Shown: piece after piece, positions 54,798 through 55,130 of the stretch
How the letters are laid out: each line of letters begins with the position of its first letter
How positions within the stretch are numbered: position 1 is the first letter of the stretch
IMG/VR virus record: IMGVR_UViG_3300005941_000003
Coordinates: 62,001-126,000 of that record
Direction: 5' to 3' (one strand)
DNA: 64,000 bases
The notes under the pieces: model-generated
Seen by the model: only the letters and a program-made list of their open reading frames with translations
Told to the model about the DNA's origin: nothing
Database searches by the model: none
Made by a program: the position numbers and the translations under genes

Positions 54798-55015
54798 CTA
54801 ACGCCAGCTACCAGGATCTTGAACAAAGACAAGAAAATTTTAAAAAAGAACTTGACACGACTCATAAGAATCTGATAAAATTAACATGGTATATGAGAGG
54901 CGGTGTATCACTTACAGAGATATACGACATGCCTCTTAATCATATAAACTACATAAACGAACTAATACAAGACAACATTGAATTTAGTAAAAAAGTAAAA
55001 CAAGTTGTTTTCTAG
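54782..55015 (+). CDS. gp51: gp51-like frame lacking a proper start, probably reached by -1 frameshift from gp26
   Basis: 77 open codons (FLGWLTNASY...WYMRGGVSLTEIYDMP...QVVF*); the first ATG (54893) lies inside the conserved motif; missing from the ORF track. Confidence 0.7.
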   Translation, partial: FLGWLTNASYQDLEQRQENFKKELDTTHKNLIKLTWYMRGGVSLTEIYDMPLNHINYINELIQDNIEFSKKVKQVVF

Positions 55016-55130
55016 GCTAATATAATACTAATATAACATCTAATATCTATCCCAATCAGAAAACTAATATTACATCTAATATAGGCACATAGAAAGGCAC
55101 AAAACATGGCTAATATCTATCCGTACATAG
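55012..55130 (+). repeat. Array of six CTAATAT repeats plus GGCAC motifs
   Basis: CTAATAT at 55017, 55028, 55040, 55064, 55076 and 55110. Confidence 0.85.

Follow-up and report, generated by a model that had tools for sequence, protein, structure and literature searches.

Phages T4 and RB69 control their single-strand-DNA-binding protein (SSB) through the leader of its own mRNA. In these phages the gene 32 operator consists of a 5' folded element (a pseudoknot) followed by more than 40 nt of unstructured RNA with UUAAA/UAAA repeats and the ribosome-binding site, and gp32 binds it cooperatively once single-stranded DNA is saturated (PMC535899). This autoregulation is a textbook case, but it has been seen as a one-gene loop, and T4 gp32 is not known to have a second RNA target of the kind considered here. 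Arrays of short direct repeats also occur in replication origins: T4 oriE combines evenly spaced 12-nt repeats with dependence on an early promoter, and the role of those repeats is still undefined (PMC3016281). Protein-titrating sponge RNAs such as CsrB and RsmZ carry many copies of the short motif that CsrA or RsmA recognizes at the ribosome-binding region of its mRNA targets, and phages carry large structured noncoding RNAs (GOLLD, ROOL) of unknown biochemical role.

Here, we examine a repeat array that touches on each of these systems. The window is the whole stretch of DNA that was analyzed, 64,000 nt corresponding to bases 62,001 to 126,000 of the 245,963-bp IMG/VR virus record IMGVR_UViG_3300005941_000003 (38.7% GC). 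A 342,181-bp version of the phage that is 92% complete exists, as does a 342,607-bp complete relative with terminal repeats. Genes for a gp20 portal, a gp26-like baseplate hub, the gp46/gp47 nuclease, the gp55 late sigma factor, UvsX, the large terminase, and an ATP-dependent ligase identify a T4-like myovirus, a jumbo phage whose DNA is found in marine metagenomes; the 342-kb genome is present in 13 metagenomes. By SSB similarity, the nearest cultured phages are Pseudomonas phage PA5oct (50% amino acid identity), Agrobacterium phage Atu_ph07 (43%), and the GAP32, CBB, and Rak2-like jumbo phages. A first-pass annotation of the window had described a helically phased CTAATAT array built from the words of the gp32 leader and followed by a structured region and an AT-rich stretch, and it had read the array as either a replication origin or a multivalent gp32-binding RNA segment that couples SSB levels to the downstream RNA. 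The features discussed below are as follows.

54852 to 54881, + strand: sigma-70-type promoter (TTGACA, 18 nt, TAAAAT, with TG before the -10), inside the frameshift extension of the gp26-like gene; the predicted start is near 54888, about 130 nt upstream of the first repeat.
55012 to 55122, + strand: the array, with six CTAATAT (55017, 55028, 55040, 55064, 55076, and 55110) and two AGGCAC (55083 to 55088 and 55095 to 55100).
55093 to 55165, + strand: SD-like AAAGG (55093 to 55097), an ATG at 55106 overlapping the last repeat, and a 19-codon mini-ORF ending at an invariant TGA (55163 to 55165).
55125 to 55530, + strand: core of a conserved structured RNA of about 400 nt.
55547 to 55604, + strand: AT-rich linker (about 22% GC).
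55605 to 55673, + strand: conserved 3' domain, with a covarying hairpin (55616 to 55649) and a terminator-like hairpin, AGGTCT-GAA-AGACCT (55659 to 55673).
8622 to 8746, - strand: SSB gene leader, a putative autogenous translational operator, with a promoter TTGACT-17-TAATAT (8746 to 8718), a 5' hairpin, AGGCACAAAC, three CTAAYA words (8661 to 8635), the SD AAGGAAAA, and an ATG at 8621.

The repeat array and the SSB leader

The observation behind the annotation is confirmed: the six CTAATAT copies lie on the + strand with spacings of 11, 12, 24, 12, and 34 nt, and the two AGGCAC copies, the structured region, and the AT-rich stretch (22% GC at 55550 to 55649) are all present. The clustering is far beyond chance. 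The whole record has 23 forward and 21 reverse copies of the word, none of 200,000 composition-matched shuffles of the 119-nt region had more than 3 copies, a Poisson estimate for 6 or more copies in 100 nt is about 1e-15 per window, and no other 7-mer in the record reaches 5 copies within 110 nt. The array also has a higher-order structure, in that a 23-nt unit holding two words is duplicated 36 nt apart and a 13-nt unit (CTAATATCTATCC) occurs twice. The array lies in the largest noncoding gap of the record (54798 to 55699), between the gp26-like gene (53925 to 54797) and a PDDEXK_15 nuclease gene (55700 to 56239).

The claim that the array shares its words with the SSB leader is likewise correct. 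A 7-mer-sharing scan of the record singled out one other place, the leader of the gene at 7587 to 8621 on the - strand, which encodes an SSB (phrog_1192, E 8e-68); the Pfam gp32 model gave no hit in the record, but it gave none in the control genomes either, and a zinc-finger regular expression for gp32 was uninformative, such that the identification rests on PHROGs. The three words of this leader are CTAATAT, CTAACA, and CTAATA at 11- and 10-nt steps. Clusters of three or more CTAAYAH within 30-nt steps exist at only these two places in the record, the 92%-complete genome gives the same picture for adjacent CTAAYA pairs plus one lone pair elsewhere, and in the complete relative G002 the same two loci carry the tandem words, with isolated pairs at the level of the reversed-pattern control.

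More than 586 viral contigs encode a relative of this SSB. In 28 distinct leaders there are 3 to 5 words, 76 of 77 steps are 9 to 12 nt, and the last word starts 18 to 22 nt before the ATG in 27 of 28. The repeat region has no consensus structure, and a hairpin precedes it in most leaders, which is the layout of the T4 and RB69 gene 32 operators. With respect to the folded nucleation element of those operators, a pseudoknot was not demonstrated in the SSB leaders and no conserved hairpin was identified between the promoter and the array, observations that leave the presence of such an element undecided at either locus. More distant cultured relatives keep the layout with other content: Atu_ph07 has a hairpin, then four CACAAYT at steps of about 10 nt, then the SD; GAP32 has repeated GAAGCAAA; and PA5oct, the closest cultured relative, has a hairpin and an A/U-rich run without a clear repeated word, which counts against the reading favored below. 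In Atu_ph07 the only other tandem occurrence of its word in 490 kb lies in the leader of one other replication gene, that of the topoisomerase II large subunit, where we estimate that about 0.1 such occurrences would be expected by chance. Lineage-specific words with a very small set of targets fit an autogenous operator better than a general regulator.

The array itself is conserved. An exact-pattern scan with an invariant hairpin of the region found 43 viral loci. In the 23 distinct loci with enough upstream sequence there are 4 to 7 CTAAYA words, always in the sense orientation and directly before the RNA core, with the last word starting 14 to 17 nt before the conserved AUAGUGG that begins the core. 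The unit consensus, including its flanks, matches that of the SSB leaders. A divergent member found with a covariance model has a different 5' half but still has two CTAATA words directly before its first long-range helix.

Could the words be signals in DNA rather than RNA, for example, tandem -10 elements (TAATAT), late promoters, or operator sites for a DNA-binding repressor that controls both the SSB and the RNA promoters? The -10 hexamer of the SSB promoter is itself TAATAT, and at both loci the repeats lie just downstream of promoters. However, across 117 aligned repeat units the invariant letters are C, T, A, A, T or C, and A, whereas the final T that a -10 hexamer would need is only 65% conserved, and there is no -35 element or TG. 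The late-promoter-like motif of this phage is GATAAATAC, with 48 of 64 ATAAATA copies lying within 90 nt upstream of an ORF start, and CTAATAT is not enriched upstream of ORFs. In addition, the spacing is not helically constant, and the position beside the SD and AUG is conserved. We reject the late-promoter and tandem -10 readings on these grounds and consider DNA-level transcription signals in general the least likely of the alternatives.

One correction to the annotation concerns helical phasing. The period in the window is about 11.7 nt, not 10.5, such that the words at 55017 and 55064, 47 nt apart, would face opposite sides of B-DNA. Conservation of the spacing had been proposed beforehand as a test, and in the 23 loci the short steps are 9 (11 cases), 10 (6 cases), 11 (27 cases), and 12 (6 cases) nt, together with irregular longer gaps that are roughly double and triple steps. 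A second proposed test, GC skew, places the cumulative minimum at window position about 62,655, 7.5 kb away, at a divergent gene junction. No initiator-like gene is adjacent, the neighbors being the gp26-like baseplate hub and the PDDEXK_15 nuclease, followed by ligase and gp46/gp47, and no Rep-like family was hit. The resemblance to an origin is fair, given direct repeats with a period of about 11 to 12 nt, an early-type promoter upstream, a 22% GC stretch downstream, and a structural-gene neighborhood, and one could imagine either iterons for an initiator or a structured transcript that primes replication by invading the AT-rich stretch, as in ColE1 RNA II or the T4 oriF/oriG R-loops. Replication initiation was not measured, no marker-frequency profile was made, and an origin is not formally excluded, but the same words sit in the SSB mRNA leader beside its ribosome-binding site, and the structured region is an RNA that covaries strongly over its whole length and is abundant as free RNA, with a variable AT-rich linker inside the same transcript (see below). 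The origin reading is not supported, and the array is most likely not a replication origin.

Transcription of the array and the RNA behind it

Several lines of evidence place the array in a transcript. The promoter at 54852 to 54881 has 11 of 12 consensus matches, a TTGACA/TTGATA-18-TAnnnT promoter stands at the equivalent place, 130 to 165 nt upstream of the first word, in 22 of 22 distinct relatives, and four of them carry a second consensus promoter directly before the array. Six RNA-seq runs from five studies hold parts of the region, and contigs from four of these runs, each from a different study, were aligned to it at 80% or more identity; all four cover the RNA. In the marine run X17, short contigs of 205, 506, and 269 nt at word depths of 1109, 739, and 341 span 55074 to 55653, carry the last repeats and further CTAATA-type sequence at their 5' end at the same depth as the RNA core, and stop at their 3' end in the AGGTCT...AGACC hairpin, whereas pieces matching the flanking genes have depths of 0 to 48. 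These are unstranded contigs of relatives, RNA libraries may hold DNA, and the flanks are too divergent to be compared fairly; still, short contigs of very high depth that end at the borders of the element are what a discrete abundant transcript gives. In another run, X15, a 594-nt contig continues 160 nt further upstream, through the whole array of a relative. As RNA the array is predicted to be an unstructured run of CUAAUAU words, its fold being no better than shuffles (z +0.92).

In contrast, the region that follows is structured. The + strand of 55100 to 55560 folds with z -3.7 and the - strand with z -0.6. Twenty-four contigs encode a relative of the downstream nuclease, and the 684-nt noncoding region is about 71% identical at the DNA level in loci whose nuclease is only 58 to 69% identical as protein. 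On 23 sequences, RNAalifold predicts 77 pairs, 32 of them with compensatory changes, including closure of the 5' end (CAUA and GUGG, 55126 to 55133) with 55526 to 55529 and with an internal CCAC. The core contains GNRA-capped hairpins and a three-way junction at 55378 to 55461, in which 97.8% of cells are paired against 25 to 45% when partners are slid, and 11 pairs covary through double changes against 0 to 1 in these controls. The AT-rich linker varies in length and sequence (one locus, L007, has a 46-nt insertion) and is part of the same transcript, since an X17 contig runs continuously from 55354 to 55653. The 3' domain (z -3.7) is kept even where the next gene is a GIY-YIG-like ORF instead of the nuclease, so it belongs to the RNA, and relatives follow its second hairpin with a T run.

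The identity of this RNA was sought in several ways. No Rfam 15 family matched at the gathering score over the window, and only chance-level hits appeared with permissive settings here and in two relatives; no tRNA or tmRNA was found; the noncoding region has no blastn match among GenBank phages; and group I or II introns and RNase P, considered by eye only, had no supporting match. A covariance model of the three-way junction finds the RNA in two complete relatives and one divergent clade but not in PA5oct, Atu_ph07, or GAP32, nor in four other partial relatives. An exact-pattern scan of 185,579 cellular genomes gave only two hits, both chance matches inside bacterial coding genes. Four ncRNAs have been reported for PA5oct (PMC7318152) and were not compared directly.

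At the junction of array and core, an in-frame ATG opens an 18- to 23-codon ORF that ends at the invariant UGA of CGGGAUUGA in 22 of 23 distinct loci. In loci L113 and L131, a 1-nt deletion inside the ORF is matched by a shifted ATG, whereas locus L139 lacks the ATG and the divergent member G003 also lacks the mini-ORF, which cannot be essential to every member. A conserved micropeptide is unlikely to be the main reason for the conservation of 55106 to 55165: the variable residues follow the compensatory base changes of the first hairpin, so RNA structure is the stronger constraint, but a translated short frame seems to be kept. The ORF runs over the 5' strands of the closing helices and the first hairpin. 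The array plus SD plus AUG thus looks like a copy of the SSB translation start region grafted onto the 5' edge of the RNA.

Given the SD and AUG at both loci, is the array simply a translation enhancer, or a leader that loads ribosomes and stabilizes the RNA? In such a scheme, the A/U-rich words would recruit ribosomal protein S1 or 30S subunits, giving very high translation of SSB, and ribosome binding or translation of the mini-ORF would protect the 5' end of the RNA from RNase E. SSB is a very highly expressed protein, T4 gene 32 transcripts are the most stable T4 mRNAs, with translation increasing their stability (PMC3014915), and the RNA is abundant. However, other highly expressed genes of the phage (capsid, sheath, and portal) lack the word, and neither the invariant C nor the lineage-specific change of word is expected for generic S1 binding. 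We consider this reading unlikely.

A proposed RNA-level platform for the SSB

In total, the second interpretation of the first-pass annotation is the one that the comparative evidence favors, whereas its first is not supported, so the annotation as a whole is partly supported. We propose that the array works as RNA, not as DNA, as the unstructured 5' part of a discrete, abundant phage transcript and as a second copy of the control region that precedes the SSB gene. The analysis itself establishes the words, their exclusivity to two loci, their conservation, their transcription, the lack of structure in the array, and the covarying RNA behind it; that the binder is the SSB, and what binding does, we infer by analogy with T4 and RB69 gp32, neither binding nor translational repression having been assayed. 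In this model, free SSB that is not engaged on single-stranded DNA would bind the words cooperatively. On the SSB mRNA, binding would cover the ribosome-binding site and shut off SSB synthesis, and on this RNA it would cover the start of the mini-ORF, whose translation runs through the 5' strands of the helices that close the core. SSB occupancy would then decide whether ribosomes load on the RNA or whether it folds and survives. Conversely, the many sites on an abundant RNA, more than on the mRNA, would compete with the SSB mRNA for free SSB and raise its set-point. We hold the general statement, an RNA-level platform for the factor that binds the SSB leader, most likely the SSB, to be somewhat more likely than not.

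Could the binder be another sequence-specific factor, for example, a RegA-like translational repressor, another phage RNA-binding protein, or an endoribonuclease that processes both RNAs at the CUAAUA words? T4 RegA binds unstructured A/U-rich sites at or just 5' of the AUG, and selection with RB69 RegA yields UAA triplets (PMC3014915); CUAAUA contains UAA. In Atu_ph07 the SSB-leader word also precedes the topoisomerase gene, so more than one mRNA can carry it, and T4 gene 32 mRNA is processed by RNase E in its leader. On the other hand, the Pfam RegA model finds nothing in the 92%-complete genome, a weak result given that it also found nothing in any control genome; RegA has about 30 targets in T4, whereas only two loci carry the word here; and in every lineage the word sits in the SSB leader (PA5oct, without a clear word, aside), which fits autogenous control best. 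We view this alternative as unlikely, though less so than the others.

We speculate further that a new class of large structured phage RNA is gated by the SSB. The array would sense free SSB, that is, how much single-stranded DNA the infected cell holds, and would thereby switch the RNA between a translated, unfolded state and a folded, active state, while buffering SSB synthesis by competing with the SSB mRNA. This would be a protein-sensing riboregulator that links DNA replication status to an as yet unknown RNA activity in abundant marine jumbo phages; the evidence does not exclude it, but we regard it as unlikely. The operator's words are duplicated onto a separate, highly expressed noncoding RNA in a whole family of uncultured marine jumbo phages, which suggests that the free-SSB signal is read by a second target or that an RNA sets the SSB level. 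The analysis also uncovers a conserved, covarying RNA of about 400 nt with no described family that is abundant in ocean, estuary, and salt-marsh metatranscriptomes, and SSB-leader repeats with lineage-specific words recur across the PA5oct, Atu_ph07, and Rak2-like jumbo-phage group.

Comparison with described systems

Like the ColE1 RNA II primer, the transcript is a promoter-driven structured RNA of about 0.5 to 0.7 kb, followed or ended by an AT-rich stretch, with a 5' region that could receive a regulatory input. There is no evidence of an RNA-DNA hybrid or of initiation, however, and the RNA carries its own 3' hairpins after the AT-rich stretch. With T4 oriE and iteron-type plasmid origins the locus shares a cluster of direct repeats with a period of about 12 nt near an early-type promoter, but the spacing in relatives is variable, there is no adjacent initiator gene or skew inflection, and the words are transcribed and shared with an mRNA leader. 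Like GOLLD and ROOL, the RNA is several hundred nucleotides long, phage-borne, conserved, rich in covarying pairs, found in aquatic samples, and of unknown biochemical role; it has no similarity to any Rfam model, is smaller, sits at a fixed position after the gp26-like gene, and has the operator-like 5' array. As in the CsrB/RsmZ sponges, an abundant noncoding RNA carries more copies of the short motif that sits at the ribosome-binding region of the regulated mRNA, although sequestration was not examined here; the motifs lie in unstructured RNA rather than hairpin loops, they occupy only the first 100 nt, and they are followed by a large covarying core whose role a sponge model does not explain.

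The closest system is the gene 32 operator of T4 and RB69. An unstructured run of short repeated A/U-rich words following a 5' structured element and leading into SD and AUG is what the SSB leader (8622 to 8700, - strand) shows, and the array, with six words in 100 nt, reproduces the word run and the SD plus AUG. The word is CUAAUA at 9- to 12-nt steps rather than UUAAA/UAAA, and the array precedes a mini-ORF and a noncoding RNA, not the SSB gene; no such second target is described for T4. The array is therefore operator-like, not the operator: what is already known is the gp32-type operator, and what differs here is its proposed use a second time, at the head of a previously undescribed structured RNA.

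Reading frames, promoter motif and skew in the record

Upstream of the structured RNA, a -1 programmed ribosomal frameshift is likely in the gp26-like baseplate hub gene. The features at issue are as follows:
window 54774-55015, + strand: likely -1 programmed ribosomal frameshift and extension
window 54795-54797, + strand: zero-frame stop
window 55125-55673, + strand: conserved structured RNA
The slippery sequence A_AAT_TTT lies 15 nt before the zero-frame stop, and the -1 frame continues for about 80 codons to 55015. AAATTTT and the short overlap are kept in all 13 relatives checked, and the extension peptide is conserved.

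Across the whole record (G000), the late-promoter-like motif of this phage is GATAAATAC, and 48 of 64 ATAAATA copies lie within 90 nt upstream of an ORF start. The cumulative GC-skew minimum of the record falls at the divergent junction between the gp55 block (- strand) and the next + strand block (window about 62,367-62,655).

The structured RNA and its divergent member

The RNA at 55125-55673 consists of a core of about 400 nt plus 3' hairpins; it is conserved and covarying, has no Rfam family, and is present at high depth in marine, estuary and salt-marsh metatranscriptomes, although its own function is unknown. The 12-nt spacer inside the array (ATCCCAATCAGA; window 55049-55060, + strand) is 92% complementary to a segment of the core 298 nt downstream (window 55359-55370, + strand). 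The spacer sequence differs in relatives, so the complementarity is probably not conserved, though pairing to their cores was not checked. A divergent member of the RNA family (L167:1090-1800, the locus in genome G003) has only two CTAATA words and a longer, different 5' half, yet it shares the three-way junction, the invariant-type hairpin and the 3' hairpin, and it could help define the minimal conserved core.

Leader words and neighboring genes in relatives

In Agrobacterium phage Atu_ph07 (loci L106:925-1003 and L164:1200-1240), the SSB leader carries four CACAAYT words at steps of about 10 nt. The only other tandem pair in 490 kb lies in the leader of the topoisomerase II large-subunit gene, and the annotated start of that gene looks about 63 nt too far downstream.

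The gene that follows the RNA is also not the same in every relative. In three of them (loci L114, L119 and L141), a GIY-YIG-like ORF stands downstream of the RNA instead of the PDDEXK nuclease gene. This difference suggests mobile endonuclease traffic next to the conserved RNA, as with segG next to T4 gene 32.
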